From Piromyces finnis finn (taxonomy: Eukaryota > Fungi > Neocallimastigomycota): DNA of 64,000 nucleotides. The notes beneath the pieces were generated by a model. It was not told the DNA's origin. It saw nothing but the letters and a program-made list of their open reading frames with translations, and searched no databases. Below are positions 1 to 50,527 of the stretch, piece by piece. The position numbers and the translations under genes are program-made. Numbering within the stretch: position 1 is the stretch's first letter; the number at the start of each line of letters is the position of its first letter. The stretch lies in contig MCFH01000080.1 in the NCBI GenBank assembly GCA_002104945.1, positions 127,875 to 191,874 of the forward strand. Reading direction: 5' to 3'.

Positions 1-3000
1 TCACTTGAACGTTTATGGATATGTGAAACAAAAATATCAAAAATAAAAGGGTTGGATGCTTGCACAAAATTAGAAGAATTATACTTGTAAATTTAAAAAT
101 TATTAATTATTATTTTGATATAAAAGGATTAATTAGATATAATTAAATGAAGTAATCACATTACTAATATAAATCATTGTTATTTCATTTTATTCATCAA
201 TAATTATTTGATACATATGAAGATATGCTAACAAAATCAAAAAAATCGAAGGATTAAATAATAACATTCATATTAAAAAATTGTGGATTTTTAGTAATGG
301 TAGATATTTATACAATTTATATAGTATTAGTAATAAGAATACCTCATATATAAATTAAATATTAATTTTTTACCACTCTTTATTTTATAATACACTTAAT
401 TATTCTTTATAAGAAATTGAACAAATTGAAAATATTTCTCATCTAAAACAACTGGAAGATTTAAACATATCAGGAAATAAAATTCAACAAATTAAAAATT
501 CACTCGCAGAAAATACTAATTTAAAGGTTTATAGTGATAATTATATTATTATACAGATTATTTCAAAATAAATATTAAATATTTTTTTATATAAAAATAT
601 ATATTTCTTGATATAAAAATATTTTCATTAATTTTAAATAACTGATAAAAAAAAATAATACTGGTGGAATTCATTTAATCATAGACATTACATATAGCAG
701 GAAATAAATTATCATCCTTTAATGATTTATTAAATTTAACTCGCCTTTTAAATTTAGAAACTTTAGTATTATCAAGTCAACTTTTTGATAATAATCCTAT
801 ATGTGATCTTTTAAATTATCAAACTTTTATAATTTTTCATATGACATACATTAAACAATTAGATGATATTGAAATTACTGATGAATCAAGAAAAACTGTA
901 GCATCAACAATTATTAAAAAAAGAATGTAATCTATCAACCAAATATATATATATATATTATTTCATTCTAAAAAAAATCTTTATCATATCTATCCAATTA
1001 AAATTTATTTTAACTGATCCTTTTAAATATATAATTTATTTTATTTTATTTTTTTTTTTTATAAAAATGATATATATAATTATTTATAATATTTATTAAG
1101 GTATTACAATACTCAAATTCAAGCAATTCATAGAAATAAAAATTTCTTAATAAGATTTTTAAAAGCAACATATCTTCAAAGAACATGCATTTTGGAAGAT
1201 GAAATAAAAAAATCATATATTAGAATCCGTACATTACAAAGATTTCTTTACGATCATGAAAACAACATTTGTGAACATAATAAAGTAAAATTTTTTAATA
1301 CATATACATTTTTATTTGTTTTATTAAATATAAAGAATACATAAAAATTAAATAAATAAATAAAAAAAAAAGAGATGGTTTGTAAAAATATTTTAATCTT
1401 AATTTATATAATAAAAATACGTTTATTATATTTATTATTTATTCTTTTTATTAGTTAATGGAAAATGATATAAATAAAACAATTTCAGATTTAATGAAAA
1501 GTATTCAAATGAATTGGAATTCCATCAATCAAATTCAAAACAGTATAGTAAAAACTGGAACACATATTGATTATCAAGGTGATATAGAAATAAGGTATTC
1601 TATCTTTTACTTAAAGCATAATGGATATAAAAATTATATATATATATTTTTTCAAAATTTATAATAAAAAAATTTTTATTACTAAAATATATAAATATAA
1701 TATTATAAAATATTTTTTAACAATAAAAGAAAATTACAACTAGAATTAGAAACTGGTGGTAATATTCGACTTGAAAAAACAATGATTGGAAGTTCATGGT
1801 ACAATTTTGGATCAAAATTTTTACTATCTGAAATATTAAATAGTAATTCAAGCATAAAATGCGAAAATATAAAAATTAATCGAATATCTCTCATATATAA
1901 TCGTCATATCTTTAAAATATTTGATGTAAATTTAGAAAGCATTATTCGTATATTAGTATTTTATATTATTAGCTAAAAATAATTAAATAAATATTAATTG
2001 CAAAAAAAAATTATGTATTTATAATATAGAATTTCATAAATCAATATTCAAAGGTTAAAAAAGAAGAACCTCTTTATGCTATGTATACAGTAGTTAATAA
2101 AAAACATAATAGTGCGGAACCAGAAATCTTTTCTGTTATTGAAAATGGATTTACACAAAATAATTATAAATGGGTATTAAATGGAAATATTATAACCCAT
2201 AAGACACCAAAAGTTCCTATATTTGAAAAAGGAAATTATCATTATACTATTATTTCAAGGGTATATACAAAACAAATGATAGTAAATTCACTTTCTTCTA
2301 AAAAAAATAGAGAAATAAAAGAAGACTTATTACCTGAATACGATAGTAATGTTATTGTTGAAGCTATTCGTCCAGAATATTTGGTTGAATATTATATTGA
2401 TGAAGATATCAGTAAAAAGAGACCACCCATTGAACAATATATTATTGAAGTTTCAAATTCAAATCAATTATCAAATTTAAATATGTCCTACGCTATTCGT
2501 CCATACATAGAAACTATTTTAGAAAAAGAAGTAATAAACTATTATTATATTTATTTATTTTCAACAATATAAATTAAACTGATTTTATTTTATTTTAAAT
2601 ATATAATATTTTATATATTAAAATTATTAAAATAAAATGTATATGTTACTTTTTTCCTTATTGTATATATATATATTTATATATAGATGAAAGAACCAAT
2701 TAAAAAGTATATTGTACCAATATTAAGTAATGAATCAGAAGAATCTGAAATTAAAAAAATGGGAGTAGTAAATTCCACAAACTTTAATGTAAATATCATA
2801 TACTTTCAAGTTCTTAAGCCTTTTCTAAATATATGACACTATCTATATAAATATAATACTATTATAGAATATACTAATATACAATATTAAATTAAATATT
2901 TTTATTAAAAAAAATAATAATGATAATATAAAATCCATTTATAGATCTCTGCTGAAGTTTTAGAAAGTACAAAAACAATTAATTTTACTGGATCATCCAT

Positions 3001-5159
3001 AAAGAAAATTGAAGATTTTACACCATTTATTGGAATTAAAAAATTGATTTTATGCAATAATAAATTAAAAAGTGTTAATGGTATAGAAGCATTGAAAAAA
3101 TTAGAATTTTTGGATTTATCTTTTAATGAAATTAAAAAATTAGATTTTTTAAAAGATCTAAAAAAATTGATTCAATTAGAAATGCTTTCAAATTTGATTA
3201 CAGATGTAACAGGATGTAATTGGAAAGAAATGTATGGATCAATATATATATTTTAATTAGCTCATAAATATATATATAATTTTTCCAAAGGATGTTATTA
3301 ATTATTATAAAAATTAATGAAACTTTTTTTTTTTTTAATTTTTTGATAAAATTATTCAGTGCTCCAAATTTAATTATTGCTGATTTTAGATTTAATCCAA
3401 TATTTAATAGAAAATATTATCAAAAGTGGATGATCAGTCATTGTCAAAAATTAGAATATTTAGATGGCTTAAGAATAAATAAAAAAGTAATATGTTATTA
3501 AAATGTTTAATATATAAAATATTTAAAATATAAATGAATTTATTATGTAAACTATGAATTATTGGTATATATCTTTAACATTTTTAGAATAGATTCCAAG
3601 GCAATGTTATAAATAATGATATTATCATAAATAATTCCAGTATTCAACCATTCTTAATTCAACAACTTTCTATGAGAAAAAAATGGGGTGAAAACTCTTC
3701 TTCTCGATTAATAGAATACAGTGTTATTGGCAATATGACAAAATTTTCATTTAATGATATATTACCCTACATTTCATTATTGGAATTGGATAACTGTAAT
3801 TTAATTGATATTTCTGACTTTTCATTTGAGTTAGTATCTTAATTTTTTTATAACAATCCTATTATTGTTTTTATTCTATTAAATCAAATATATAAAAATA
3901 ATAGTAATAACCTTTTTGTTTTATATTATTTTTTAAAAAAGAAATTTTGTAAATTTACGTTGGTTAAGTTTAAGAAATAATTATATAAAAGATATTAGTT
4001 CACTTACATTATGTCATAATCTTATTGAACTATCCATTGATAACAATGATGTTGAGTATATTGACTTTTTATCATCACTAAAATACCTTCAAAAAATTAA
4101 TGCCAGTTCAAATAAAATTATGTTATTTGATCCTAAAGCTGATGTAGTGTTTGAATCTTTAACACAACTTAATTTAGAAAATAATTCAATAAGAAGTCTC
4201 AAAGGAATAAAAAAATTAACATCCTTAATGGAATTATGTAAGAAAATTTAAAAAAAGAAAAAAAAAGAAAAAAAAAATTAAACTTATTAAAAAATTTTCA
4301 AATTTTCTTTCTTTTTTTTTTTTTAATTATTAATTTGTATTATTCTATTTTTAAAAATAAATTAAAAAGATTTAGGAAATAATTATATTAGTGAAACTTC
4401 AAATATCTTCTTCTTGAAAGATTTACAGAAATTTATTATTTTAGATCTTACAGGAAATTCAATATGTAGTATCCAAAATTATAGATTATTTATAATATAT
4501 CACCTATCCAAATTAAAGGTAAATAAATACATTTTATAATATGGAAAAAAAAAATATATTAAAAAAAATATATATTTTTTTATTTCTTCTTATATTTCAT
4601 ACATAGGTTTTAGATGGTATAGCTTGTACCTTAAAAGAATATTCTGATTCAAGAGAAATTTATTTAGGTTTGTTAACCACAGATATTTTATATCAACATG
4701 TTGGAAAATCAAATATTTCTTCACTTACCAAACTTGATTTAAGAAACTGTAAAATAAAAAACATTGAATGTTTCGAAAAAATTGAATTAAATCAATTAAT
4801 TATATTAAATATGGATAATAATAATATTAATTCCTTGGAAGGACTTCGAAAACTTACAAGTTTGAAATTCCTAAGTCTAAATAATAATAAAATTGAAAAA
4901 TTAGTTAGTAGTAATTATATGTCAAAAAACTTACCAATAGTTTTCCCAAAAATAGAAGAACTTCATCTTGGAGGTAATTTAATCCAACGTATACCCGATA
5001 TCTCTATGGTGAAATTCCCATGTCTAAAACTCTTATTCTTAAATAATAATAAAATTAATAAGGTATTAATTATTAAAATATATCAACATAAAAAAAAAAA
5101 AAGTCATGTTACAAAAAATCTATATTTATGTCTATAATATTAATTTTTCCTTCTTTAAA

Positions 5160-5193
<34 letters not shown>

Positions 5194-6081
5194 TTGAAAG
5201 ATTCAACACCATGCCAACATTAATTGAACTAATTGTAAATAAAAATCATATTAAAACAATAGATGATGATGGTTTTGATGGATTATACAACTTAAAGGAA
5301 TTACAAATTAAGTATGTATAGATTTATGATTGAGCATTTTAATTGTTAAAATGATATTATATATATATATATAAATAGATTAACTAACTTTTAAAAAAAA
5401 AATTATTTTTTTTTTTTAAAAAAAGGGACAATTGTCTAAAATCTATAGCTAATTTAAATTCATTATCTAGTTTAAGAAGATTATATCTTACAGGAAATAG
5501 AATTCAAGATTTAAATGAATTAGGAGTAAGTTATATTTATATATTAATGAATAATACGATAATAATATACATTACTTATATACTTATCTATCATACATTT
5601 CTTCCTTTATTAATAAATTTATCTTAAATAAATATTAATATAAATAAATAATAATAAAAAAAAGAAACTATCCTTACCAAATCTTTTTGAGATATTTATT
5701 TCTCAAAATCCTATAACAAAAAAAATGGGATATCGTTACACTTTAATTATAAGACTTCCAAAACTTACTTCCATTGATGGAAATGAAATAACCTCAGAAG
5801 AAAAAGAAAAAGCAATTGTAATATTTTTATATTTATATCAATTAATTATTATAAAGAGTCAATAAATTTTATTATTTTTATTACTCATCATTTTTTTATG
5901 ATTTTAAATTATATTACTAATAACTATATAGGATTATAATATTGACGGAATGAATACATGGGATGAACGTACATCATTAATTCAAAAGCATCCATCATTA
6001 ATTTCCACTACCAAAATAAAATGCCCTATTAAAGTAACAGCAATGGTATTTGATGTGGAATCGACAATTCCTACTAAATAA
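1..6081 (+). CDS. LRRC9: Multi-exon leucine-rich-repeat protein, LRRC9-like; 5' end lies before the window
   Basis: Spliced translation gives SLERLWICETKISKIKGLDACTKLEELYL, LHIAGNKLSSFNDLLNLTRLLNLETLVL..NNPICDLLNYQTFIIFHM..KKRMYYNTQI and ELETGGNIR, then many further LRRs (ORFs 3044, 4670). These segments match my recollection of animal LRRC9 in order. Exons are bounded by GT-AG introns; last exon 5932-6081 ends ..VESTIPTK*. Confidence 0.75.
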
Positions 6082-6227
6082 TCTTACCTTAATAAAGGTT
6101 ATTTATTTATTTTTTTTATTATTGTTATTATTATTTATTTATTTATTTATTTTATTTAATTATTATTTATTAAATATCAAATTTATTTATTCAAAAATAA
6201 TCATTTTTACAAAATTACATATTAAAC

Positions 6228-6282
<55 letters not shown>
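6228..6282. repeat. (AAT)n microsatellite
   Basis: Pure AAT run; produces the spurious poly-Ile ORF 6050..6442. Confidence 0.9.
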
Positions 6283-6826
6283 CATTTATAAAGAAAATTT
6301 AAAAATTTTATTTAAAATAATTACACAAAGTTTATTTTCAATATACCAATATCTAGTAAAAAACTTTTCTTTTTATCTTTTCGTTATTCACATATTTATT
6401 ATATATAATATAGATTATATATTTATACAAATATTTGTTTAATAGTAAAATGGCTAAATTAAATTTTTAATGTATTCTATAATAAATAACAATCTTTAAT
6501 AAAAATTTATAAAATATAATGAATTTATATAAAAAAAAAAAAAGAAAAATTATATATATATAGTTTAAATAATTTATCTTTATTGAATATTAATTATCAA
6601 TAAATATTTGAATATGGTATATTATAATTTCTAATAATACGATATGAAGTGAAAATTGTTTGTTCTTTTAATAATAAAAAAGTTAATAAATATAGTTTTA
6701 GAGTTATGAATTGCTTATAATAACTTATTTAATATTGTTTTTTTTTTTTTTTTTGTTGTTGTTGTTGTTGATGTTGTTGCTTTTTCTTTAATATATTTCG
6801 CTAAATGATAGAATAAAAGATAGTTA

Positions 6827-7960
6827 TTACTTCTTTTCAAGTTTGCTTAATAAATATTCCAACTATTTTTGTATTTTTTAAAATTTATAATTATAAATTT
6901 ATATTAAAATAAATAAATAAATTAGAAATTTCAATTATTCAAAAAAAATAATAATAAGAATTTTTTATAATAAACTTACTTGATTTTTCATAATTGGTTG
7001 ACCTTTACTGTTTTTACGGGCTAATTTATGTCTGATACTTTTTCTATTTCTGAAATATTCTTTTTTCTTTTCAAGATTCTCTTCTTTTATTCTTTTCTTT
7101 TCCTTTATTATTATTATCAAAATGGAATTAATATATTATTACTTTGAAAAAAAAAATATATTTTTTGTTTATTGAATATTATATAAATAAATTTATGAAT
7201 ATATATAATTACTTCTAATTCTTTTCTCTTTTCTTCTCTTTCTTTATTTCTTTCTTTTATAGCTTTAGCAAATGGATTTGGTTTTCTATTTTTATTAGTT
7301 TTTTTATTTTTGTTCTTTCCTTTATTAGAAGTCTCTTTTTCTTCATTTTGTTCAGTTTCAGAATTACTATTTTCACCTTCATCACTTTCAAAATCTTTAT
7401 AACTTAATTCATTGTCTTTCTTTTCTTTTTCTTCTTCTTTATCAGTACCGAAAATCTTTTATGAATATTATTATTTTTATTATTATTATTATTATTATTA
7501 TAAAAAATAAATGGTTATAGTTCATATATTTAATTGATAAAAGATATTAATAAAAGGTTTTTTTGTTTTGTTTTGTTTTGTTTTGTTTTCCTTTTATATA
7601 AAAAAAAAATAATTATAATACTAACTTCCTTAATATAACTTGGAGTATCATCTACTTCATTTTGAATACTCTTGTAATATTTGCTCTTAATTTTTGATTT
7701 TTCTATGAGCTTACGCTTTTTTTTTATAACTTTTTTTTTTTTTTTTTTTTTTGAAAACCAAATTATTTGAAATTAATAGATATAAAGACAATTAAAAAAA
7801 AAAAAAAGAAAGAAAAAATTAATGTTTATTCCTATATTATCATTTTATATATAAAATTTTCTATTTTAAAATATTTATTTCATTACTTTTTCCTTTATAT
7901 GTATTTCCAAGATTTCTATTCATTTTGTTACTCAAAATAATTATTCAAATTTTATATATA

Positions 7961-7999
<39 letters not shown>

Positions 8000-8076
8000 T
8001 TTAATAAATACTTTTTTAACCAATCATTCTTTTTAAAATAATACTAAAGTACAAAAATTCTTGTAATAGCAGCCAT
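6827..8076 (-). CDS. FYV7: Lys-rich rRNA-processing protein, FYV7/CCDC59 family (multi-exon; start codon and first exons uncertain)
   Basis: Minus-strand exons read KKKRKLIEKSKIKSKYYKSIQNEVDDTPSYIKE, RKPNPFAKAIKEE and RKSIRHKLARKNSKGQPIMKNQ|LEYLLSKLEKK* (stop 6827-6829). The KGQP.M....LL.K C-terminus is typical of this family. Confidence 0.6.
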
Positions 8077-9137
8077 CTTTATGGCTGTGAATAAAAAATA
8101 TCTGGTAGAAATATCACACCAAAAATTTAAAATAAATTTTACAAACAAAATAATATTTAAATTTTACTTTTTTTTTATTTTATTTTATTTATTTATTTCA
8201 AATAAATATTCTTTTCTATTTTGAATTTAAAAATAAAATATTGATTTTTAAATATTATATTTATTTTTATTTATTTATGATTATTTAAATGAAATATATT
8301 TTAATATAGCTTAAAAATATTTATTAAAAAAATTATATTTAAAAAATTATATTAAATAAATAACTTTTATATATATGAAATGATTATTAAAAATGAATTA
8401 ATATTAATGAAATATAGTCTATTTTCTTTCTTTAAATCAAATTTTTCATATATATAAAAAATCTTAAAAATGAATAATTAATATTTTAAAGTATTCAGAA
8501 AACTTTAAATTTGCCTTTCATTCTTCTATAATTTATATTTCTATTTTACATTTCTGAATCGTTTATGAATATTACTTGTTCATTTTTTAGTTTTTAATTT
8601 TTTTTTTGTTGTTGTTTTTGTTTTTGTTTTATATTTGTTTTGTTTTGAATTATTGTTTTTCGATGTTTTTTTTGTTTTGTTTTGTTTTGTTTTGTTTTAG
8701 GTATTAATTTTTATTTAATTTTGAATATGAATAAAATTACTTTTTTTTTTAATAAAATTTAATATATTTTTTTACTGTATTTTTATAATAAATTTTTATA
8801 AATAGATAATAGTTATAAAATGTTGATATTAAAATAGTGATATTATTATCTGTTAACTATTGGAAATAAAAATTAATTTTACATTTAAGATAGTTTTATT
8901 TTTTTTTTTTTTTTTCTGAATTTTTTTCGATTCTTTTTCTGTAATTTTTAATTTTTTTCATTTATTTTTCTAGTTTTTTATTTACTGAATAATTTATCGT
9001 TTTTTTTTTTTTTTTTTTCAACTAATGTTGGTGATTACACATTACTCTAATTTGTAATTATTAAATTGATTGAGTATTAACACACATAACATAGTTGTGT
9101 TAAAAATATAAAATGTATTAAAATGGTATCTTAAAAT

Positions 9138-37381: not shown

Positions 37382-39324
37382 ATGCAAGCTTTATTAAATC
37401 AATCAAACGGTTTACTCAAAAAGACTGCCTCTATTGGTTGTCAAAGAGGTTTAGCTTCTATGTCTGAAGCTATTAAGGAACGTATCAGATGCCCATCTAT
37501 GCTTAAGAAGGTTACCAACAATCCAGAAGATGTTACCAAGCATCTTTTCGATGATATGCGTATGGGTTGGTCTGGTTTCACTGGTGTCGGTTACCCAAAG
37601 GTAATTAATAAAAACAATTATTATTTCTAATATTTCTATTTATTCCAAAATATCTATTGTTTAAATTTATTTTATTAAAAATAAATTGTGATCAATGAAT
37701 AAAAATGTAAAAAATCAATTAATTAGTAAATTTATTTGAATAGTAATAAAAAAATAAGAGAAAGTGAAATGAAAAAAAAATAAATTAAAATTTATTTTAA
37801 ATACTTATTCAATTTTACAATGAATAATTATACATTATAAGAATGATAAGAATAAAAATTAAAAAAAAATGATATTTTTATATTAAATAGGTTGTCCCAG
37901 AAATGATGGCTCAACATGTTGAAAAGAACAACCTTAAGGGTAAGTTCGGTATCCACTTAGTTATTGGTGCTTCTGCTGGTGCTGCTGTTCACAACAGATT
38001 AGCTAAGTTAGATATGCTCAAGTTCCAAGCTCCATTCCAAAACGCTAAGGATGTTAAGACTTGTATTAACACTGGTAAGACTAACTTCGCTGATACTCAC
38101 CTTTCCAAGTTCCCAGTCGATTTATTATACGGTTACTACGCCTTAGATAAGAAGGTTGACCCAGAATTCCCACTTGATGTTGGTGTTCTTGAAGCTTCTG
38201 CTATTACTGAAGATGGTTTAGTTATCCCAACTGCCTCTGTCGGTACTTCTAACATTATTGGTCAAGTTTCTAAGAAGATTATTATTGAAATCAACACTGC
38301 TGAACCATCTTTCGAAGGTATGCACGATATTGAAACTGAAAACCCACCAAACTGTGGTCCACTTATGATCAAGAGCGTTGGTGACAGAATCGGTACTAAG
38401 GGTATGAAGATTGACCCAAGCAGAATTGTTGCTATTGTTGAATCTACTACCCCAGATAAGACTCCAAACAACACTAAGCCAGATGCTAAGTCTCAAGCTA
38501 TTGCTAACCACATCGTTGACTTCTTCAACCAAGAAGTTAAGGCTGGACGTATGCCAAAGAGTCTTTACCCACTCCAATCTGGTATTGGTAATGTTGCTAA
38601 CGCTGTTGTTTCTGGTCTTGTTGACTCTCCATACGAAAACGTTACTGTTTTCACTGAAGTTTTACAAGATTGTTTCCTTGATTTCTTCGACAAGGGTAAG
38701 CTCGACCATGCTTCTGCTACCTCTATCCGTCTTTCTCCAGATGGTTTCAAGAGATTCTATGCTAACAAGGACAAGTACGCTCCAAGAATTACTCTTCGTT
38801 CCCAACACATCTCTAACTCTCCAGAATTAATTAGACGTCTTGGTGTTATTGCTATGAACACTCCAGTTGAATTCGATATCTACGGTCATGTTAACTCTAC
38901 CTGTGTTATGGGTACTCGTATGATCAACGGTATTGGTGGTTCTGGTGATTTCCTCCGTAACGCTAAGTACTCTATTATTCACGGTCCAGCTTGCAGAAAG
39001 AGTAAGAACGATAAATTCGGTATTACTACTGTTGTTCCAATGGTTACCCACTGTGACCACCCAGAACACGATTTAGATGTCTTAGTTACTGATGAAGGTT
39101 TAGCTGATATTCGTGGTTTAGCTCCAAGACAACGTGTTGACCGCATTATTGACAACTGTGCTCACCCAGTCTACCGTCCAATTCTTCACGAATACTACGA
39201 TCTTGCTTACGATGAATGTCTTAAGCGTAAGGCCGCTCACGAACCACAATTACTCGACAAGGCCTTCAAGATGACCTTAAACCTCCAAAAGAATGGTACC
39301 ATGAGAATTGACAACTGGAACTAA
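37382..39324 (+). CDS. ACH1: Acetate:succinate CoA-transferase / acetyl-CoA hydrolase family, 550 aa, with an N-terminal organellar presequence; 2 exons (37382-37600, 37891-39324)
   Basis: GWSGFTGVGYPK|VVPE, LQSGIGNVANAV, TEVLQD, EFDIYGHVNST..MINGIGGSGDFLRNA and DHPEHDLDVLVTDEGLADIRGLAPRQR are Ach1/ASCT motifs. Strong high-expression codon bias. Confidence 0.95.
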
Positions 39325-40081
39325 GTATCTTAATAAATTAATTTAAATAGCCATCCCTCCTTTTTTTTAATATCTTAGAATTTAGAAAAAGAAAAAGAAA
39401 TAAAAAAAGAGGATATATATCATAATTAGAATATATAAAAATAAATATGCCAGTAAAATTATAATAAATAAAAGATTTATTTTTCTTTTTATTTATTTAT
39501 TTTTATTTGGAATTTATTTTATTAGAAAAAGTAAAATATAAAGTAGTATAACAAAGTCTTTTTTGAGTATTCCAAAATACAAATTAAGAAAAAAATATTT
39601 CAAAGAAAGAAAGCTTTTATTTATTTTTTTTTTGTAAAAATAAAACTAATAATAATAAAAACTAAAAAATCAAAAATATATAAATTAAAAAATGCTAGTA
39701 AAATATTAAAATATAAAAAACTAAATTTTAGGAAATTAAATAAAAAACCTTCATATAATAAAAAAAAATAATTTATTTTTATTATTTATAAAAAACCAAT
39801 ACACAAAACGAAAATACTAAAATTACATCTATCAAAATTTAACTATTATTTTTTTAAATTAAGAAAAATAACGGTTAAAGTATTTATATATAAAATAATT
39901 AATAAATAAAATTAAAAAAAATTTAAAAAAAAATTTGAAATATTTTATTTTGGTATTTAAATTTTAATAAAATTTGATTTAATCATTAATATTAAAGGAT
40001 TATGAAATAATTTAGTGGAGATGTATTTAAAATGGTATAATAAAGTTTATCATAATGATATTTTTTATATAAGCAAGACAA

Positions 40082-40163
40082 GTCAGTTTGTCCGAGTGGT
40101 TAAGGAGTTTGACTCGAAATCAAATAGGCTCTGCCTGCGCAGGTTCAAATCCTGCAGCTGACG
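40082..40163 (+). tRNA. tRNA-Ser(CGA), intronless, long variable arm
   Basis: Acceptor stem GTCAGTT/AGCTGAC, D arm TCCGAGTGGTTAAGGA, anticodon arm TTTGA-CT-CGA-AA-TCAAA, variable arm, T arm GCAGG-TTCAAAT-CCTGC, discriminator G. Confidence 0.97.
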
Positions 40164-40168
40164 TTTTT
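40164..40168 (+). terminator. Pol III T-tract terminator of tRNA-Ser
   Basis: TTTTT immediately after the discriminator base. Confidence 0.8.
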
Positions 40169-40237
40169 ACTTTGGATTTAAATTTTTTTTTTTTTTTTTA
40201 AAGAAAAAGTATATTCTATTCAACAATCATTTCAACA

Positions 40238-40535
40238 CCCCCCTCTTGGGAACGTGCCTTCATTTATTTAATAAATGTAGTTTCTCAAGGGGGTCTACTC
40301 ATGCTCATGGTACTGAGAGAGTAGAAAGAATTAAATCCAAGTATTGCGCAATGGATGCTTGGTGCCCTCTTAGGAATGTGCCTTCATTTATTTAATAAAT
40401 GTAATTTCTCAAGGGGGTCTACTCATGCTCATGGTACTGAGAGAGTAGAAAGAATTAAATCCAAGCATTGCGCAATGGATGCTTGGTTAGTCTTCAAGGG
40501 AAAATTATTAGGACTAAGCTCATGGTACTGAGCGA
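40238..40535 (+). repeat. Structured ~124-nt tandem repeat (2 units: 40241-40364, 40365-40487) plus a terminal two-hairpin module; candidate RNA element
   Basis: Near-identical units, each folding into three hairpins; differences between copies mostly preserve pairing. Confidence 0.85.
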
Positions 40536-41130
40536 TTAAAAAACATTTTATTCATCAAATTTAAGTATTTGATGAATAAGTGAATGTTTGATTTTTCAGG
40601 TAAGTTTGTATAGTATTTAATTAGAAGAGTAATACATTTTGTTGCTGTATTTTTTCTTTTATTCATGTATTCATGTAGTACTACTCTTCTCTTGTAAGAA
40701 TCCAATGTAGTCAACTTTAGCATTTGCATTGTACTTTTATATTCATGTAGCTATTGTTGTATTGTTTCTTGTAAGAGACTGATTCACTCTACATCATGTA
40801 AAAATACTATTCACAAGCTTTCTGGTGTCGACATTCTTGATTCAAATTTTTTACCAATTTAAATATTTAATGAAAAGTAAAGTCAAACAAGTTTAGTGTC
40901 AAAAAGCGAATCGAATTTACTAACAACAAACCAAAACTAGAATTTTTAAAGAAAATTTACAACTAGAATTCAAAAAAAGAAACTTTAAACAAAGCATCGT
41001 AACAATTTTTGTACTATCCAGTACTTTTAAGAAGAGAGAGAGAGACAGATTTTTTTCCATATACGTTATATTTGTAATTTTTATTAGTATTTATTTTATA
41101 TTCAATATTTTTTAATTAGAATTTATTATC

Positions 41131-44100
41131 ATGTCAGTCCTTTATATTAAAGATAAGAATTATATCAGACGTGGTACCCGGTCTTATGGTATCCCCTTAG
41201 ATGATATTCGCTCCTTCTTTATCCGTGGTATTCGATCATGGTCAGTAAATATGCTATGGGAAAAACTCGAGGTTATTCTAGAAGATAAATTTAATTCAGT
41301 TATTAGTGTTAAATATTTTCAAACTTTCAATGATCACTTTTTCTTAGTCAAGGTTCATGGTTCATCAAAAGATTGTATTAAAATCTTACACATGTTAAAG
41401 AAGAAACTTTCAGTTACCTCAATTTCCTTTTCAGCTCGTAGTAGAAGGAATCACAAATACACTTTTTCCACTCTCAAACGTAAAATTTTAGTTTCTAATA
41501 AACATCAACATTCTATTCAACAATCATTTCAACAATCAGTTCAACAATCAGTTCAACAATCTCATCAACAATCCGATCTTCAACAAGATCTTCAACAGGA
41601 TCTTCAACAAGTTTCCCATCATGAAAATATTCCAGATCTACAGCAAACACAATTTCAATCTCAACATTCAACAATTAATTCTAATAGTTCTATCAACTCT
41701 GATAACAGTTCAATAGTTGATAGTTCTTCAGTTTCACAGCCATCTAGTAATAGTTCTACTTATTCCTCTGATGCATCATCCATTAATAACGATGACTTTA
41801 ATAATAATAATAATAGCAACGATTCTTCCTCATCCAACAAGCCTGATAACTTTTCTTTTTGTCTTAGTTGGAACACCAATGGGTGGAATCATGAAAAGAG
41901 AGATAGTATTAGCTATTTCACAGCTATTTTCAAACCATTATTCTTATGTTTCCAAGAAACTGGTAATGGTTCTGGATCGAATACAGATTATCCTTGTCGT
42001 GTTACTTTGCGAAACTATAGACACTTTTTCAAGAAAGCTGACGAATCAGTTCCGGGAATGAGAGGTTTATATTTAGGTTTTCACAATTCGTGTCAAGCCT
42101 CACTTGAAAACTTCTCTGGAAAGTATATTATTTCTATTTATACTTTTAGTCTCTGGAATAGATTCAAATGCTCGATTGGAAATGTTTATATGCCTCATAG
42201 TCATCACAACATCTATGTTGATCATGCAAAGTTAGAAGTTCGCTTGTGGTTACAAACTCATTCATCCCATCCATCGATTCTTGTTGGTGATTTTAATATG
42301 TCTAAAGTAAAATTATCCAACTGGTTATCAACTAATGGATTAGGAGATTGGGAAATTCTTCCGCTTAGAGGGTCTACTATCTCTTGGACTCGAGGTGATC
42401 AATCTTCCGACATTGACCATGCTCTTATCAATTCGAAGATGAAAGATCTTATTCACTCAGGATCATTTATAAATAATTTTTATCCTGTATCAGACCATAA
42501 GCCACTTCTTATTAATGGTAAAATTATTCCTATGGAAGATTTTTCTAATGACTTTAATGTTCCTAAGAAAATTCTGAAATGGAATAGATTAAAATGTATT
42601 GAGGAAAAGGAATCTATTATCAGTCATAATAAATTCCAAATTCTTTCAGCAAAATTCAACGATCCTAATGTTTCTACAGATGAACTTTCCAAAGAGTTTA
42701 CTTCAACTGCTTTTTCAATTGCAGACGAGCTCAGTATTACTTCAGCAAATAATGTTATAAAGTCTTCATTTCATATTTCACAACAAATTTTTAATCTCCA
42801 AAAAATCAAAATGAAGTTGTATAAGAGATTTAAAAAAGAAAGAATTTATGATATAGATGAATTTATTAAAAGAATTAAAATCTACCGTAAGCTCATTGAT
42901 TACATCCACAAAAGATGTAATGAATTTAGGAAACAAGAATATCTTCATTGGATTAAAACAGGATGTGAGTATATGAAGAGTCATAATCCTAAGAAGGCCT
43001 GGAAATGGATCAAGAAAACTGCAAAAATTGGAAAAGATTCTTTCTTTATTGCTCAACCAATTAAAAATAAAAATGGAGAATTAGTTGTTGCTACGGAAGA
43101 ACAACTAGATGTGTGGCATGATCATTTCGAAAAGCTTGCATCAGATCCAAGTGGTGTAAGTCTTGATTTGGAGCATTGGTATGAAGAACCAACGAATAAA
43201 CGTTTTTCACTCCCTATGCTTGATGAATGGGATATCAACCAAGATATTAGTATTGATGAAGTCAAGTCAGCTATCCTCTCTACTCCGAATTATAAAGCAT
43301 CAGGTCCGGATGGTATTCCAATTGAATTTTACAAAGCATTAATTCCATCAAGTAATGATTCTAATAATGCTACAGATAATAATTCTTCCGGTAATACCAC
43401 TTCAGATAATGATGCTTATGGTTTAAATTTTATTCTTAAATTATTCAACCGTACTTGGAATGGAGATTTCCCCAACTCATGGAATGAATCCAGTATTGTT
43501 TCTATTCCTAAGAAGGGAGATTTGACAGATTGTGATAACTATCGAGGTATATCACTTATCAATAATGGTATTAAGTTGATTTCCAAAATTGTCACCACTA
43601 GAATCTCAGAATATGGTCTAAAGAATAATTTCATTAGACCTGAACAATTTGGTTTTCGAAAAAAGGAAGAAAGTATCAGTCTTTTCATTTCAATCCAAGA
43701 AATATGCCGTAGACGTCAATTAGATAATAAAGAGACATATTTGGCCTTTTTAGATCTCAGGAAAGCATACGATTCAGTCCCAATCGGTAATATTCTCCAT
43801 AAATTAGATTGTTTAGGAATCCGAGGTAAGAGTTTACAATTCATCAAAAATTTATATTTAACATCTAAGGCTAATGTCAAATTAGATGGACAATTCTCGA
43901 AATCTTTTGATGTGAAGAAAGGAGTCCGTCAAGGATGCCCTCTTTCTCCTATTCTCTTTAATCTCTTTATTAATGATATATTTAAAGAGTGTGAAGATCT
44001 CGGAGTCAGTTTAGGTGACACTCGATGCTGTGGTGGACTTTTTGCAGATGATATAGTTATTTGTGCTCCAACAAGAGGATGCTTAAAAAAGATGCTTAGA

Positions 44101-45666
44101 AGAGTTAATGAATGGGCATTGTATAATGAAATGGAATTTGGTATCCAGAAGTGTTCAACGATGGTGATTCGTCCTGAATCAATAGAAAATCAGAACAAGA
44201 GAGATCCAACATTTTACTTAGCAGGACAACCCATTCCAACTACTGATTGTTATACTTATCTTGGTGTTCCATTTGATAAGAATCTGTCCCTTAAACCAGT
44301 TATTAAAGCTCTTAATAACAAGGTTTTGAAAGGGCTTTTTTCAGTCAGTAAATTCTTAAGAAATCCTAATATTCCTATTCCCTTCAAAAAGCTAGTACTT
44401 AACTCACAAGTGATTAGCAGAGTTTCATACTTTGCACCATTACTTGGATCCAACAAAGCCAGGTCTAGAATTGCACAGAAGCATGTTAACAAAGGAATAC
44501 GATGGGTTGCCGGAGTTCATAAAGCTGTATCGTTTATATCTTTATACTCTATCTCAAAAGATTTGAATATTCCTCCATTGTCAGCCAAATGTGCATTAGC
44601 TCAGGTTAGATGTTTTAACAAATGGAAAAACTCAAATTGTATTATCTCACACCTTGTCAATTACATTCCTAAATTTAGAAAATACACGTGGTGCAAATCA
44701 AGTAGGACACTTGATAAAAAACTAAAGAAGCATGGAGATGTTAAAGCAATTAAAAACTTTTATTGGAAAGATCTCAAAGGGAATTCAATCAAAGCGCAAT
44801 ATTATGATGATAATAAATTTATTGAAACTAAAGATTTTATTAAATTATGTTATGAGTACCCAGAGTTTGCCTATGGCTTCTACTGGCTATTGAAAGCAAG
44901 AAGCGGATACAAGTTGGATGCTAGAGTTGCCAAAGCTGCTAAATTTGTTGATCCAGTTTGTCCTAACTACTGTCCATGTTGCAAGTGTGGAGATCAAAGT
45001 ATTAAACATTGGTTATTAGATTGTCCAACATTTAGAGATATCCGTATTAAACATTATGATTCTATAGTCCAGCTATTAAATTTTTTCAGTCAACGTAATT
45101 CCAATAGTCCTATCAATAATAATGAAATTGATAATATCAGTAGAGATAGTAATAACATTAATAGTAATAGTAACAATAGTAATAATAACAATAGTAATAG
45201 TAACAATAGTAATAGTAACAATAGTAATAATAACAATAATAGAAATAATAATATTAGTAATGATAGCAATAGTGAAGATAATAATTCTAATTTAGATAGT
45301 AATTTAGTTAATGATAGTAATAGTTCTAATAATCCGGTGAATATTAATGTGTATGATTATTCTAGTGTGTGCAGTGAAATATTTAAATTCCTTCTTGGGG
45401 GAAAAAGTTTTAACAATATTAATTACAATTCCAGGGAATGGAAAGAACTTTGTAAGCGTCAGATTCAATCTGGTACTAACGAAGGAACACCATTCTTGAC
45501 GGTAACCGCGGAACTTCTAACCAAAATCATGCCTTTTGCTATTGGCCAGCAATGGTCAATGTTCAAAAGGTTTGAAGCAACATCCAAGAGCGTCAATGCT
45601 GAAGAAACAGTAAGACAGGCCAGGAGGGCCAGCGCAACCAATGGAGATCATAATTTTGTTCCATGA
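41131..45666 (+). CDS. LINE polyprotein: N-terminal domain, APE endonuclease, reverse transcriptase, CCHC motif
   Basis: APE motifs SWNTNG, FQET, GNVYMP, LVGDFNM, SDIDH and SDHKP. RT motifs KASGPDGIP, NYRGISL, QFGFR, FLDLRKAYDSV, GVRQGCPLSPILF, LFADD and YTYLG. Zn motif CPCCKCGDQSIKHWLLDC. Confidence 0.96.
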   Translation: MSVLYIKDKNYIRRGTRSYGIPLDDIRSFFIRGIRSWSVNMLWEKLEVILEDKFNSVISVKYFQTFNDHFFLVKVHGSSKDCIKILHMLKKKLSVTSISFSARSRRNHKYTFSTLKRKILVSNKHQHSIQQSFQQSVQQSVQQSHQQSDLQQDLQQDLQQVSHHENIPDLQQTQFQSQHSTINSNSSINSDNSSIVDSSSVSQPSSNSSTYSSDASSINNDDFNNNNNSNDSSSSNKPDNFSFCLSWNTNGWNHEKRDSISYFTAIFKPLFLCFQETGNGSGSNTDYPCRVTLRNYRHFFKKADESVPGMRGLYLGFHNSCQASLENFSGKYIISIYTFSLWNRFKCSIGNVYMPHSHHNIYVDHAKLEVRLWLQTHSSHPSILVGDFNMSKVKLSNWLSTNGLGDWEILPLRGSTISWTRGDQSSDIDHALINSKMKDLIHSGSFINNFYPVSDHKPLLINGKIIPMEDFSNDFNVPKKILKWNRLKCIEEKESIISHNKFQILSAKFNDPNVSTDELSKEFTSTAFSIADELSITSANNVIKSSFHISQQIFNLQKIKMKLYKRFKKERIYDIDEFIKRIKIYRKLIDYIHKRCNEFRKQEYLHWIKTGCEYMKSHNPKKAWKWIKKTAKIGKDSFFIAQPIKNKNGELVVATEEQLDVWHDHFEKLASDPSGVSLDLEHWYEEPTNKRFSLPMLDEWDINQDISIDEVKSAILSTPNYKASGPDGIPIEFYKALIPSSNDSNNATDNNSSGNTTSDNDAYGLNFILKLFNRTWNGDFPNSWNESSIVSIPKKGDLTDCDNYRGISLINNGIKLISKIVTTRISEYGLKNNFIRPEQFGFRKKEESISLFISIQEICRRRQLDNKETYLAFLDLRKAYDSVPIGNILHKLDCLGIRGKSLQFIKNLYLTSKANVKLDGQFSKSFDVKKGVRQGCPLSPILFNLFINDIFKECEDLGVSLGDTRCCGGLFADDIVICAPTRGCLKKMLRRVNEWALYNEMEFGIQKCSTMVIRPESIENQNKRDPTFYLAGQPIPTTDCYTYLGVPFDKNLSLKPVIKALNNKVLKGLFSVSKFLRNPNIPIPFKKLVLNSQVISRVSYFAPLLGSNKARSRIAQKHVNKGIRWVAGVHKAVSFISLYSISKDLNIPPLSAKCALAQVRCFNKWKNSNCIISHLVNYIPKFRKYTWCKSSRTLDKKLKKHGDVKAIKNFYWKDLKGNSIKAQYYDDNKFIETKDFIKLCYEYPEFAYGFYWLLKARSGYKLDARVAKAAKFVDPVCPNYCPCCKCGDQSIKHWLLDCPTFRDIRIKHYDSIVQLLNFFSQRNSNSPINNNEIDNISRDSNNINSNSNNSNNNNSNSNNSNSNNSNNNNNRNNNISNDSNSEDNNSNLDSNLVNDSNSSNNPVNINVYDYSSVCSEIFKFLLGGKSFNNINYNSREWKELCKRQIQSGTNEGTPFLTVTAELLTKIMPFAIGQQWSMFKRFEATSKSVNAEETVRQARRASATNGDHNFVP

Positions 45667-45901
45667 TAAAATTTCGATCTTTGGCTCGGTGTCCCATTGG
45701 AAGTCAAATACAATTATTATACTTTAGTATGATAGTGGCTTTCTTACTTTAATTAAAATTACTAGAATACATTATACCCAATTTTTATTCATTTGTGTTT
45801 ATTTAAACATATTTTTTTTATTTTTATTTTATTTTAATTTTTATATTTCATGTATTATAATTTTAATTAAATTAATAATAAAGTTTAAAATATTTGATGC
45901 C

Positions 45902-45946
<45 letters not shown>

Positions 45947-45948
<2 letters not shown>

Positions 45949-46185
45949 ACTCATGCTCATGGTACTGAGAGAGTAGAAAGAATTAAATCCAAGTATTGCG
46001 CAATGGATGCTTCCCTCTTGGGTACGTGCCTTCATTTATTTAATAAATGTAGTTTCTCAAGGGGGTCTACTCATGCTCATGGTACTGAGAGAGTAGGAAG
46101 AATTAAATCCAAGTATTGCGCAATGGATACTTGGTTAGTCTTTATTTGGAAATATTATTAGGACTAAGCTCATGGTACTGAGCGA
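45947..46185 (+). repeat. Second copy of the structured array: half unit 45947-46012, full unit 46013-46135, terminal module to 46185
   Basis: Directly follows the poly(A) of element 1 and has the same sequence as 40295-40535 with a few substitutions and a different loop in the terminal module. Confidence 0.9.
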
Positions 46186-49100
46186 ACAGAGTTGATAATT
46201 TGAGTGTTAGTTGTTATATCATATATCCCTTACACCTTCAACTTATTTTTTAGATAGTAGTTGCTTTAACAACTTTTATAACATATTATTTTAAACTTAA
46301 AATTGTTTGATTCGGTAGTATTAAATACTGATTTTGAATATTTCTTGATTTCATTTTTATTTTAGCTTTCATCGATAATTTGTTATCCCAGTTTACTACT
46401 TATTCTCTTTGTTCTTTTATTCCTTTTTTATTCTTTATATGTTGATTAGTCAGATAGTTTTGTTTTTTCAGTTAGTTTGTTATTCCTTTCATTTATTCTT
46501 GAGTTTCGTGTGGGGTGCGGCTTTCATTACTATAATCATATTTAATCTTTTATTTTTTTTTCTATTTTTATTATTTTCGAGGGGCGCGGCTTTTTTATTT
46601 TTCCTTTATGATTTTATATGATTCTAGTAATATCTTTTTTTATTTCTTATTTTTTTTGTAACTCTAGATTTTCCAAGGAATCTCTTTTCTACTAACATTC
46701 TTTTGTATACTTTTTCTATCTCTTTTCTATATATATATATATTTCTTATACCTTATATTATATGTATATTTATATATCTGTATAACTTAATTAGGTTTAT
46801 TATGGACTATTATGGTAAGTATTAACACCTTTTTTTTCTTTAACATTTTTATTATCAAAGCTTCTATCCTGGAAAATCGAGTATTCTATTTTTATATTGT
46901 AAATACTACTCTTGTTTCAATTTTATCTTTTAAAAAAAAAAAAAAATTTATTATGTTTACCCAAAATTCTTCAACTTTTTTTCCATTATTTTTGATATAA
47001 CAACTTTTCACTCTTATTATCTCTCTACCTTACAACATAAACAACCCAAATGAATGTTCAATTTCAACAATCAGAATCAACACAATACAATAATCATCCA
47101 ATAAATTATACAATTCTTATAAATATAAAGAGCTTTCAAAATACAGTTATAATACAGAAATCCAAAGTGATAGATATTCAAAATTTATCTTCCCGTTTAA
47201 AGTCTTCAGTAGAGTTGGAACTAAGTTTGTCAACAACTTAGCCACTTTTCCAGTTATAAAATTTAAAATATTGTTTGACAAATAATCCACTAGCTATATA
47301 ATATATCCGTCTTTATTATTATTATTTTTATTTTACTATTTATTTTATTTCATTATCTTATTTATATTATTATATCAATACTTCAAATTATTAATATCTA
47401 TTGTCATAATAAGTTCTTTCAAAATGAACAATACCAATTGTACTGTACCTACCTTACGACGTGGTCTTCGTTTCTTCGGATCTAACTCCAATAAATCATA
47501 TCTAATTTTTATCCATGATCTTAGTTCATGGTCCAAACAACGACTAATGGAATTTCTTTTAAAGACATTCAACCCTTCAATGATATTCTTCAATCCCTCA
47601 CCAAAAAATATTCACAATCACTCGGTACCTATTTCATTCTAAAAGTCAATGGAAAATGCCCGCTTAAAGCCATGTTACTTATACACTCACTTTCTAAAAA
47701 ACTCCCAATCTCTAGTAAAATATCTTGGAAATTCATTGATAAGCTCAAAAACAATAGATCATACAAAAGCAAACGATCTATCAAATCCACTACTGGTCCA
47801 CTCTCTGACGATTTCTATTTTAGTCATCTAAGCTCTAATGCTTCCTTTTTCAACTTATGTACTTGTTGGAACATCAATGGTTGGAACCCGGAGAAAAAGG
47901 ACGGTGTTTTATACTTCGTCTCTGTTTTCAAACCTGTATGTGTCTGTCTTCAAGAAGTAGGTAACAGCCAATTCCTCTCTGGTAATGCAATTTCCTCCCC
48001 ATGCCTACCGAACTATAAACCAGTACACAGACGTGCTAATCCTAAAGTTCCAGGTATGAGAGGACTTTACATTGGTGTTCATAACTCTTGTTCCTTTACT
48101 CCTGAACCTCTTCTATATAAGTACATCATTTCAGTTACAATACTGTCATTTTGGAACCAGAGATGTACCATCGGTAATATTTACTTCCCGCAAACTAGAT
48201 GGCCGGATGCTAGATTAATTGCCTTTGATGAACTTGATAAGTGGTTAACAACGCATAACAAATTCAACCACCCAGCTATCCTTGTAGGAGACTTTAATAT
48301 GTCAGCTATTAAAATCAAATCTTATATATCACAACACTTCCCGGATTGGACTATGGCTGAGTTAACTGGTAATAATTTTACCTGGGAAAAAGGATCTAAA
48401 TCTTCATGCATTGATCATATTATATACAACAAAGCTATGACAGAACACATAAACAAATCTTCAGTATGCGAAGTTTTTCACAATGTTTCTGATCACAAAC
48501 CGATCCTTGTGTCTTGTAAAAAAGACTCTTCTGATGGTTTCAAAAAGCCTAAGAAGACCTTTAAGTGGTCAAGTCATATCTGTAACACAAAGTGTTCTGA
48601 CATTCTTACTAGTAATCGCTTTGCTGTTCTAGCTTCCGAGCTTGAAGCTAATTGCGATAGCCTTTCGGCTGACGATATGGTTTCAAAATTTTTAGATACT
48701 TCCAAAACTATAAGTAAAGAAATAAAAGCCATTGTGCCTGCAGATTTAAAAGGTCCAGCATTCCATTGCCCTCAATACATCAAAAACTTATCACATGAAA
48801 AACACCTGGCTTACAAAAATATTAAGCCCCTTTCAGATTGCGCTGACATGGAAAATTATCTTAACCAGTTCTCCATATACCAAAATCTATGTAATACCAT
48901 CAAAAAGGGTTAAGAGTAAATTCAGATCCAATCTCTATAAAGCTAATATTGTTTAGTTTCTATCGGTAAACATTTTATTGATAAAAGCTTTAGACAAGGT
49001 TGGAAAGGCCTTAAAAAACTTGCCAAACCAAGTTATTCGTCCTCCCATGTTTCAACTATTAAGGACAAGAATGGCAAGGATTTATTTACTCCTCAAGAAC

Positions 49101-49612
49101 AATTAAAACGTTGGGCTGAACATTATGAAAATCTTGCATCTGATGTTACAAATCACAGCTTAAATCGTGGTTACTGGGAAAGAGCCTTCCAATTCAACCA
49201 TATCAATCAAATAGCATGGGATATAAATGGTCCCATTTCTATTGAGGAAATTAGAAATGTTGTTCTGTCAATGAAGAATAACAAGGCTCCAGGTCCCGAT
49301 GGTATCCCAATTGAATTTTTCAAAGCTTTCTTTTGTAACGAAGAACTGGAGAAAGAACATAAGTCTGCTGGAAATTGTCTTAAATTAATTTTTAATAAAA
49401 TCTGGAATGGTTCCTTTCCTTTGAAATGGAACTCTGCTTCCATTGTTTCTATTCCAAAGAAAGGCGATCTTTCAGACTGTAATAATTATCGTGGTATTTC
49501 TCTCATCAATGTAGGTCTTAAAATTATTTCAAAAATTGTAACTAATAGAATTTCAAAGTATGCTCTTTCTCATAATTTTATAAGACCTGAGCAATTTGGT
49601 TTTCGCAATTAA

Positions 49613-49804
49613 TTCAACAATCTCATCAACATTTAGATCAAATACAGAGTATCCTTGTCGTGTTACCTTACGAAACTATAGACATAAAAATTTACAATTC
49701 ATCAAAAATTTGTATTTAACATAAGGCTAATGTCAAATTAGATGGACAATTCTCGAAATCTTTTAATAAAGTTTAAAAATATTTGATGCTGTTAAAAAAA
49801 AAAA
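49613..49804 (+). mobile_element. 192-bp non-autonomous mosaic derivative of the element-1 family, with an A11 tail
   Basis: Four collinear pieces matching element 1 at 41552-41570, 41975-42023, 43833-43908 and 45877-45904, followed by poly(A). Confidence 0.85.
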
Positions 49805-50313
49805 TACTTCATATGTAGAGGATCTCGCGGCTTTTCTTACTAAAACAATCCCTATCATTAGTAGCTCAATGGAGCTTCTTTTTAATAGATTTAGTAAGAT
49901 ATCTAGTGTAATAAAGAGCGCCGACGTCCTATCGATATGGCAAAGGAACATTCTTAATATTCAATAGACAGGGTTCAATGCTAGTATTTCTTCGAATGAA
50001 AACATTTTGAGCTCATGGGAGAGCTTAGTGAACACCACACTATCATACCTGATATTACTTCCCTTTTTTATTTCATTAGGTAGGGACCAATCCTACACAG
50101 TACGAATTGCAGAGTTCATTGAACTTTTATGTAACTTTAATAATTATTTTATTTTATTTTATATTTATATTTATACATATATTATTATTATATTATTATA
50201 TCAATATGTATTATTATCTAATATAATCACAAATTAAATAAATAAATACAAGAAGTATATTCTCTTCCTAATCTAAAAAAAATACTAAAGAAACAGTATG
50301 ATAAGTTGGTAGA

Positions 50314-50527
50314 ATTATACTTTCGTATAATAGTGGCTTTCTCACTTTAACTAAAGTTACTACAATATTCAATTTTTATTCATTTGTGTTTATTTAAACT
50401 TTTTTTTTTTTTAATTTTTATTTTTTTTATTTTTATTTTTATTTTTTATAGCATGTATTATAATTTTAATTAAATTAATAATAAAGTTTAGTAATATTTG
50501 ATGCTGTTAAAAAAAAAAAAAAAAAAA
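50314..50527 (+). mobile_element. 3'-terminal segment of the element-1 family with AATAAA and an A19 tail
   Basis: Aligns with 45716-45946 (ATTATACTTT..AGTGGCTTTC..ATTCATTTGTGTTTATTTAAAC..AATAAAGTTTA..TATTTGATGCTGTT-An). Confidence 0.85.

Follow-up and report, generated by a model that had tools for sequence, protein, structure and literature searches.

What is the hairpin-forming repeat that opens two retrotransposons lying end to end in the genome of the anaerobic gut fungus Piromyces finnis, and what could it do for them? The repeat lies in a stretch of 64,000 nucleotides (hereafter the window) in which the G+C content outside genes is ~15-20%. An initial annotation described tandem units of ~124 nt at the 5' end of non-LTR retrotransposons, took the differences between copies as covariation and suggested a functional RNA, possibly a new self-cleaving ribozyme. 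The placement is correct. The ORF behind the repeat matches both Pfam Exo_endo_phos and RVT_1, and its closest solved relative is human L1 ORF2p (1.9e-32; R2 scores 1.9e-18). With APE and RT in one ORF, a poly(A) tail and target-site duplications of 13-14 bp, the element is an L1-like LINE of the APE type, which we call family 1. A second LINE with the same cassette and a different body, family 2, follows it directly. The features of the two elements are as follows.

40241-45946, plus strand: full-length L1-like LINE of family 1, starting with CCCTCTTGGG, ending in poly(A) and carrying the APE + RT ORF
40536-41130, plus strand: non-repeated remainder of the family 1 5' UTR, ~600 nt, parts of it homologous to the 5' UTRs of the homolog loci L085-L088
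41131-45666, plus strand: single ORF of family 1, 1511 aa, with APE at about aa 245-456 and RT at aa 792-1047
45905-45946, plus strand: poly(A) tail of the first element, with the second LINE starting at once behind it
45947-46182, plus strand: cassette of the family 2 LINE
45947-46012, plus strand: partial unit of family 2
46013-46136, plus strand: full unit of family 2
46135-46167, plus strand: terminal stem-loop of family 2
46168-46182, plus strand: H2-core remnant of family 2, with the family 2 body beginning at 46183

The family 1 cassette consists of two units and a terminal module. TRF reports a period of 124 nt with 2.0 copies and 96% matches at 40241-40487, and the two units differ at unit positions 8, 13, 40, 102 and 124. 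We divide the cassette as follows.

40241-40364, plus strand: unit 1, made of element nt 1-123 and one additional G, from TRF, fold and alignment
40365-40488, plus strand: unit 2, at which no copy begins
40241-40293, plus strand: H1, the long hairpin closing the RNA 5' end (nt 1-53), from the minimum-energy fold
40294-40325, plus strand: H2, a two-part stem with loop UGGUAC, from the minimum-energy fold
40337-40362, plus strand: H3, with a stem of 9 bp and the loop GCGCAAUG, which is part of the palindrome TTGCGCAA, from the minimum-energy fold
40487-40517, plus strand: terminal stem-loop with an 8-bp stem and a variable loop, from the fold
40518-40535, plus strand: H2-core remnant GCTCATGGTACTGAG (a 15-mer, 40518-40532) and the shared end of the cassette

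The minimum-energy fold gives the same three hairpins per unit that had been drawn by eye. A single unit folds at -43.4 kcal/mol (z = -4.70), a value that 0 of 200 shuffles equalled. Over the 300-nt cassette the sense strand reaches -99.5 kcal/mol (z = -5.5) and the antisense strand -83.4 kcal/mol (z = -6.0), so that the sense strand folds better by 16 kcal/mol because of its G.U pairs. Several details of the initial description also hold: GUGCC in H1 is complementary to GGUAC in the loop of H2, the 8-bp terminal stem is kept while its loop changes (40487-40494/40510-40517 versus 46135-46142/46160-46167), and GCTCATGGTACTGAG occurs exactly 6 times in the window, where 0 are expected. Families 1 and 2 diverge immediately past ...CTGAGCGA. 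In older family 2 copies the H2-core remnant runs on as GAGTAG and resembles a degenerate H2.

The evidence for a selected fold does not come from the copies in this genome. The listed pair changes exist: pair 13/40 goes from C-G to U-A, the copy at 46013 has a U-U mismatch, and one H3 pair is U.G, C-G or U-A. The change of pair 8/45 from G.U to A-U is found only in the register of the initial annotation and disappears in the minimum-energy register, in which lower H1 is moved by one base. As covariation, however, these differences do not go beyond chance. The copies are ~97-100% identical, and the 26 distinct genomic units have a mean identity of 97%, with 97.5% of cells paired in the structure first proposed. 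Pair 13/40 is the sole double change among them; it occurs in one distinct sequence, the intermediates U.G and C-A are both present, and 163 of 500 shuffles did equally well. In the minimum-energy register there are zero double changes. The H3 pair (102/117; U.G, U-A or C-G) carries little weight because any transition from U.G keeps pairing. We therefore set within-genome covariation aside as structural evidence, since neither register beats the shuffles; the fold itself is not refuted by this.

Support for the fold comes instead from the LINEs of other species. We took homologs of the family 1 ORF (45-70% identity) from ENA, JGI and NCBI assemblies, those with names belonging to Orpinomyces and Neocallimastix, and used the contigs that include 5' UTRs. 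In each contig that reaches the 5' end of the element, it begins CCCC or CCCU right where the flank stops; the ORFs of the homologs with these 5' UTRs are 45-64% identical. Each lineage closes its 5' end with an H1 helix of 8-12 bp whose sequence is unrelated between lineages, checked pair by pair: 12 bp in P. finnis, CCCCUAGCA/UGCUAGGGG in L086/L088, 8-9 bp in L087/L090 and 4+8 bp in L089/L092. Directly behind H1, L085 and L087/L090 have an H2 with a two-part stem of unrelated, fully paired sequence and the loops UGGUGC, GUGCGG and GUACGG, which share a conserved GGURC with the UGGUAC of P. finnis. The H3 loop GCGCAAUG is identical in P. finnis, L087, L090 and L095, and in the H3 stem of L087/L090 (AACAUUAU/AUAAUGUU) 5 of the 8 pairs are changed on both sides relative to P. 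finnis. The chance frequencies in the homolog loci are 0.001 for a stem of 8 bp around a fixed 8-nt loop and 0.002 for one of 7 bp around a 6-nt loop. A covariance model built from P. finnis alone, run over both strands of 37.6 kb, scored highest at the 5' ends of L085, L090 and L087, which were its first three matches (E = 0.04-0.11). The middle helix of H1 in L085, GAGGAC/GUUCUU against GGGAAC/GUUUCU in P. finnis, favours the register drawn in the first place. These helices were compared in 5-7 lineages aligned by hand, with the pairs checked by script; MAFFT/RNAalifold on the same cross-lineage set recovered H1 alone and misaligned H2 and H3. Helices kept through two-sided changes across lineages, with H1-H3 rebuilt on unrelated complementary stems, support a conserved, structured cis-RNA selected on the sense strand at the extreme LINE 5' end, as judged by comparison of sequences. 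A 5-nt complementarity between the internal loop of H1 and the loop of a downstream hairpin is kept in five lineages. A pairing of the H1 and H2 loops, and a role for the palindromic loops, would be an after-the-fact reading from few lineages and is only a lead. A search of JGI metagenome contigs with the cassette patterns gave 0 matches.

Where the copies start tells more about how the module is used. At least 40 copies are 100% identical to the cassette over 295 nt, and all of them start at the base corresponding to 40241; the best 30 copies share the same first base (CCCTCTTGGG...) in unrelated flanks. Genome-wide there are 239 starts of the unit 1 type and 118 exact unit 1/unit 2 junctions. 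Unit 2 is not used as a start anywhere in the genome: GGTG followed by the start of unit 2 occurs 118 times, and the same start after a base other than G occurs 0 times. Family 2 copies (86-100% identity) mostly have one unit and the terminal module; the divergent cassettes of this genome were gathered by way of family 2 bodies. The number of units thus varies from one in many family 2 copies to two in family 1 and at least four in contigs C124 and C133, where up to three consecutive unit 2 starts are spaced 124 nt apart. In sequencing runs that are probably RNA (the label is our guess, and contigs only were used), the element has a word depth of 500-9000, and the flanks have 0. We also looked for the footprint of a cap as an extra G before nt 1 and found no excess; the preceding base is mostly A or T, with G at ~10% of the starts listed. 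A G is present at two inherited internal junctions, nt 123+G and nt 213+G.

The cassette is found on LINEs that are otherwise only distantly alike. For instance, the APE regions of families 1 and 2 are 38% identical, whereas their cassettes are ~97-100% identical. In a second example, from sister NCBI assemblies, the ORFs of L087 and L090 are 43% identical and their cassettes 97% identical over the first ~92 nt, after which the sequences are unrelated. The same 5'-terminal segment therefore sits on different families in both pairs, and these comparisons show, at the level of sequence, that the module has been exchanged between LINE families with proteins just 38-43% identical. Since the exchange crosses such deeply different proteins, factors of the host are favoured over element proteins as its partners.

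To see how tandem units arise, we decomposed 13 arrays against the element. Nearly all of the added upstream segments start at nt 1 (sometimes at nt 2-3), and the outermost is sometimes truncated at its 5' side. Their ends are scattered, at nt 18, 45, 45, 67, 67, 68, 86, 188, 190, 191, 213, 379 and 460, and the joints hold 0-26 extra bases. Neighbouring starts genome-wide are spaced by 32, 69, 81, 90, 98, 118, 124, 128, 129, 189, 212, 214 or 259 nt, mostly not multiples of 124. The fixed unit 1/unit 2 junction has the same form as the array joints (nt 1-123, an extra G, nt 1). At four loci, target-site duplications of 13-14 bp span the whole array.

L010/L071: ATTACTTCAGCAA
L080/L082: TACAAAATAAAATA
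L076/L083: TCATTGTAATCCC
L079/L084: TCATTTACCCTCT

In the array of L076, segments of two sequence variants alternate inside one duplication. Nested insertion accounts for a single case: the junction of L014 at nt 95 is an insertion with a duplication of its own and not a template switch. As a general cause it fits L014/L072 only, as the arrays of L010, L080, L076 and L079 each lie inside one duplication, and it is unable to yield runs such as 1-45, 1-45, 1-95. From the starts at nt 1, the variable ends and the duplications around whole arrays we infer template switching by the reverse transcriptase at the RNA 5' end. The footprints show that further module copies are added on the upstream side, in register with that end and within single insertion events. 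In the simplest mechanism, the reverse transcriptase would reach the 5' end of its template, switch to an internal site of a second RNA and copy to nt 1 again; such switching would also put the module onto other LINE families, and the tandem units would be by-products and not a designed array. LINE enzymes are known to jump from one template end to another (cited in PMC2881922).

A similar joint occurs in another fungus. In L092, an ENA metagenome scaffold, a 55-nt stretch that normally lies behind the 5' hairpin also precedes nt 1 (CCCC) (positions 1-185), a reiteration of the 5' end of the same kind as in the P. finnis arrays.

Based on these data, we propose that the cassette is a portable 5' module that acts as an internal promoter in DNA and as a non-catalytic structured leader in RNA, with its tandem units made by template switching; we hold this to be moderately probable. 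As DNA it would be an internal Pol II promoter from which transcription starts at the module's own first base. As RNA it would form a leader without catalytic activity, whose conserved, partly palindromic loops would be contact points for a protein or another RNA, for example if the internal loop of H1 paired with the loop of H2 as a kissing contact or a pseudoknot. It is an attractive idea that the palindromic loops (GCGC, GUAC, UGCA) might aid RNA-RNA contact and template switching. The putative promoter and leader are preferred because many copies in unrelated flanks have exactly the same start, because the module has moved between deeply different families and because the probable RNA runs cover the element at a word depth of 500-9000 and its flanks at 0. 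There is also precedent: most LINE 5' UTRs contain internal promoters, and promoter replacement is frequent (PMC2881922). A full promoter in each unit predicts starts at unit 2, and none exist; the proposal therefore needs the two changes within the first 13 nt of unit 2 to disable initiation.

An alternative is that the RNA creates its own 5' end. Such a new kind of RNA, acting either as an undescribed self-cleaving ribozyme or as an exonuclease-stalling fold, conserved in gut-fungal LINEs and movable between families, is in our view unlikely. Taken by itself, a new ribozyme class, in which transcription would come in from external promoters and self-cleavage would release the element precisely at nt 1, in the manner of the HDV-like ribozymes of R2, RTE and L1Tc, we consider quite improbable. 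It would fit the coincidence, seen in all lineages, of the RNA 5' end with the base at which a conserved helix begins to pair, as well as the conserved unpaired motifs and the possible pseudoknot kept in five lineages. It would also fit the target-site duplication that abuts the first segment in 4 of 4 cases, so that no flank was carried along, and there is a precedent in Pr77/L1TcRz, where a single 5' segment combines the two activities of promoter and ribozyme (PMC3185411, PMC3383444). However, the copies argue against it. Unit 2, with all three hairpins, is never a 5' end (0 versus 118), and at least 3 loci hold arrays made of nt 1-213, an extra G and an intact cassette; at two of these, L010 and L080, the array has a separate target-site duplication. 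These whole arrays were retrotransposed with an intact internal cassette, and therefore this cassette was left uncleaved in those RNAs. These points weaken the ribozyme and make it unlikely, although an inactive unit 2 or incomplete cleavage could account for them.

Known ribozymes offer no match either. The initial annotation could not fit the cassette to hammerhead, HDV, twister or pistol cores, and the Rfam cmscan that it had called for, run on both strands of 38000-50000 with permissive filters, agrees: at E <= 10 it returned a tRNA and a chance snoRNA match only. With these sensitive filters no Rfam ribozyme family (HDV, hammerhead, twister, pistol, hatchet and others) was detected at E <= 10, and the same holds for the small ribozymes taken together (hammerhead, twister, twister-sister, pistol, hatchet, hairpin and VS). 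HDV-like ribozymes have a nested double pseudoknot in the order P1-P2-P3-L3-P3'-P1'-P1.1-P4-J4/2-P2'. Read by hand, this order cannot be drawn for the cassette, because the middle helix of H1 occupies the bases that P2 and P3 need. The bases between the strands of the helix at nt 1 pair with one another (middle helix and apical hairpin), leaving no P2 strand and no 3-bp P3 with a 5-10-nt L3 beside P1'.

A different possibility is that the units are promoter monomers purely at the DNA level, as in mouse L1, and that the hairpins are a by-product of palindromic transcription-factor sites with no role for an RNA fold. Tandem units of variable number upstream of a non-repeated segment fit this view, and ATTGCGCAAT and the GTAC-type palindromes resemble putative dimeric transcription-factor sites; in addition, the orientation of the motif GTACTGAG differs between lineages. 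The cross-lineage comparison speaks against it: inverted repeats 18-40 nt apart stay complementary while their sequence is replaced, which factor sites do not need, and G.U pairs make the sense strand the better folder. We give this explanation a small chance.

An exonuclease-stalling fold similar to an xrRNA, at whose first intact H1 the 5'-to-3' trimming of read-through or decapped transcripts would halt and so set the 5' end, is very unlikely: it would explain why the 5'-most intact unit is always the end while internal units are protected, and would suit a conserved helix from nt 1 with a possible tertiary pairing, but it has no match among the catalogued Rfam xrRNA families and is drawn from the pattern of copies only.

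Targeting to tRNA genes, or Pol III read-through from them, is rejected, as a tRNA gene lies within 1.5 kb at just 2 of 60 loci. The comparison with Dictyostelium TRE5-A made in the initial annotation fails accordingly: the host is an anaerobic gut fungus and not a dictyostelid, and a tRNA gene is near 2 of 60 copies only. The TRE5-A A-module is similar in that it, too, is repeated at the 5' end of a non-LTR element and is regarded as an internal promoter, but the few tRNA-adjacent P. finnis copies (2 of 60) lie downstream of the tRNA gene. Both belong to family 1 (2 of 30, 35-77 bp downstream; 0 of 30 in family 2), behind a tRNA-Ser at 40082-40163 of the window and a tRNA-Leu at 1196-1278 of L003. 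This proximity is far below general targeting and yet above the expectation for random 100-bp windows; the T-run behind tRNA genes may simply be a good target for the endonuclease.

The promoter and leader that we favour have one of their two closest parallels in the 5' monomers of mouse L1Md (A, Gf, Tf) with their tether, which are likewise arranged head to tail in variable number before a non-repeated segment and are swapped between subfamilies. The P. finnis element, with its variable tandem units followed by a terminal module and a 600-nt unique UTR, has the layout of such a monomer array. In mouse L1, new monomers are added on the upstream side, and the mechanism of monomer duplication "remains unclear" (PMC6454616). 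The systems differ in several ways. The mouse units are ~200 nt long, against 124 nt in P. finnis, with no relation in sequence. The first mouse monomer is cut on its 5' side at an internal start site, whereas P. finnis arrays start at unit nt 1 and have segments cut on the 3' side; we looked for a mouse-type start inside the first monomer, and copies start at unit nt 1, with none at unit 2. Moreover, the P. finnis unit is also a conserved, covarying RNA fold, and its duplication footprints point to the RNA 5' end.

A second parallel is Pr77/L1TcRz of the trypanosomatid elements L1Tc, NARTc, ingi/RIME and SIDER, a short segment at the extreme 5' end that is common to different retroelement families and acts inside the transcript; its dual nature as DNA promoter and RNA structure is documented (PMC1874656, PMC3185411, PMC3383444). 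The P. finnis cassette differs from it in having no HDV-like fold or Rfam match and in belonging to another host phylum. The HDV-like ribozymes of R2 and RTE are similar in that a helix begins right at nt 1 of the element RNA and in being prone to pseudoknots, but the cassette lacks their nested double-pseudoknot topology. R2/RTE HDV-like elements depend on host co-transcription at fixed sites, whereas the P. finnis copies lie in diverse flanks. We also note a resemblance to retroviral dimerisation initiation sites, kissing hairpins where loops with short palindromes (as GCGC, GUAC and UGCA here) occur in an RNA with frequent template switching; LINEs are not known to package two RNAs.

We found no paper on the LINEs of Neocallimastigomycota. 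The cassette adds an undescribed conserved cis-RNA, without an Rfam family, at the 5' ends of LINEs in this group. Its young, near-identical copies keep the footprints of the birth of LINE 5' monomers, so the template-switch model is directly testable in P. finnis. LINE families that are far apart in sequence bear one and the same 5' module, both within P. finnis and between two sister assemblies, and this makes a clear example of how a promoter or leader is captured. We know of no genetic tools for anaerobic gut fungi, and a compact, self-contained module that is highly expressed in the probable RNA runs is a candidate promoter/leader for them.

Several features of the elements outside the cassette deserve mention. 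The first 240 aa of the family 1 ORF (41131-41850) have no Pfam match and may stand in for a separate ORF1. A consensus-like 5' splice site (CAG/GTAAGT) lies at 40586-40595, ~55 nt past the cassette in the unique 5' UTR, and a pyrimidine tract with AG at 41108-41119 lies just ahead of the family 1 start codon; putative counterparts of this intron end are found at ~800-815 of L085, with CAG one base before the ATG, and at ~497-510 of L090. These signals could mark a 5'-UTR intron whose removal would take out many upstream ATGs. Joints of the putative intron were absent from the contigs of the probable RNA runs, and a search for spliced retrocopies lacking it gave 0 matches. The last ~200 nt before the poly(A) (45716-45915) recur at 50314-50519, past the family 2 body, with 89-100% identity, and represent either a 3' end common to both families or another fragment of family 1. 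A new copy very often begins immediately behind the poly(A) of an older one, so that LINEs are stacked head to tail, as at 45905-45947 of the window; further stacks are present at L012, L019, L020, L028, L031, L038, L044, L046-L048, L058 and L060. This stacking is consistent with an endonuclease that prefers A/T runs.

Lastly, in an older sublineage of family 2 (L062, C198:173000-175500; L067, C69:10000-12500) the apical hairpin of H1 is missing its 3' arm through a loss; a loose end at 40406 in run X2 belongs to the same observation. In the same sublineage, three substitutions make a new 4-bp apical hairpin (CAUC/GAUG), which looks like repair of the hairpin after the deletion.
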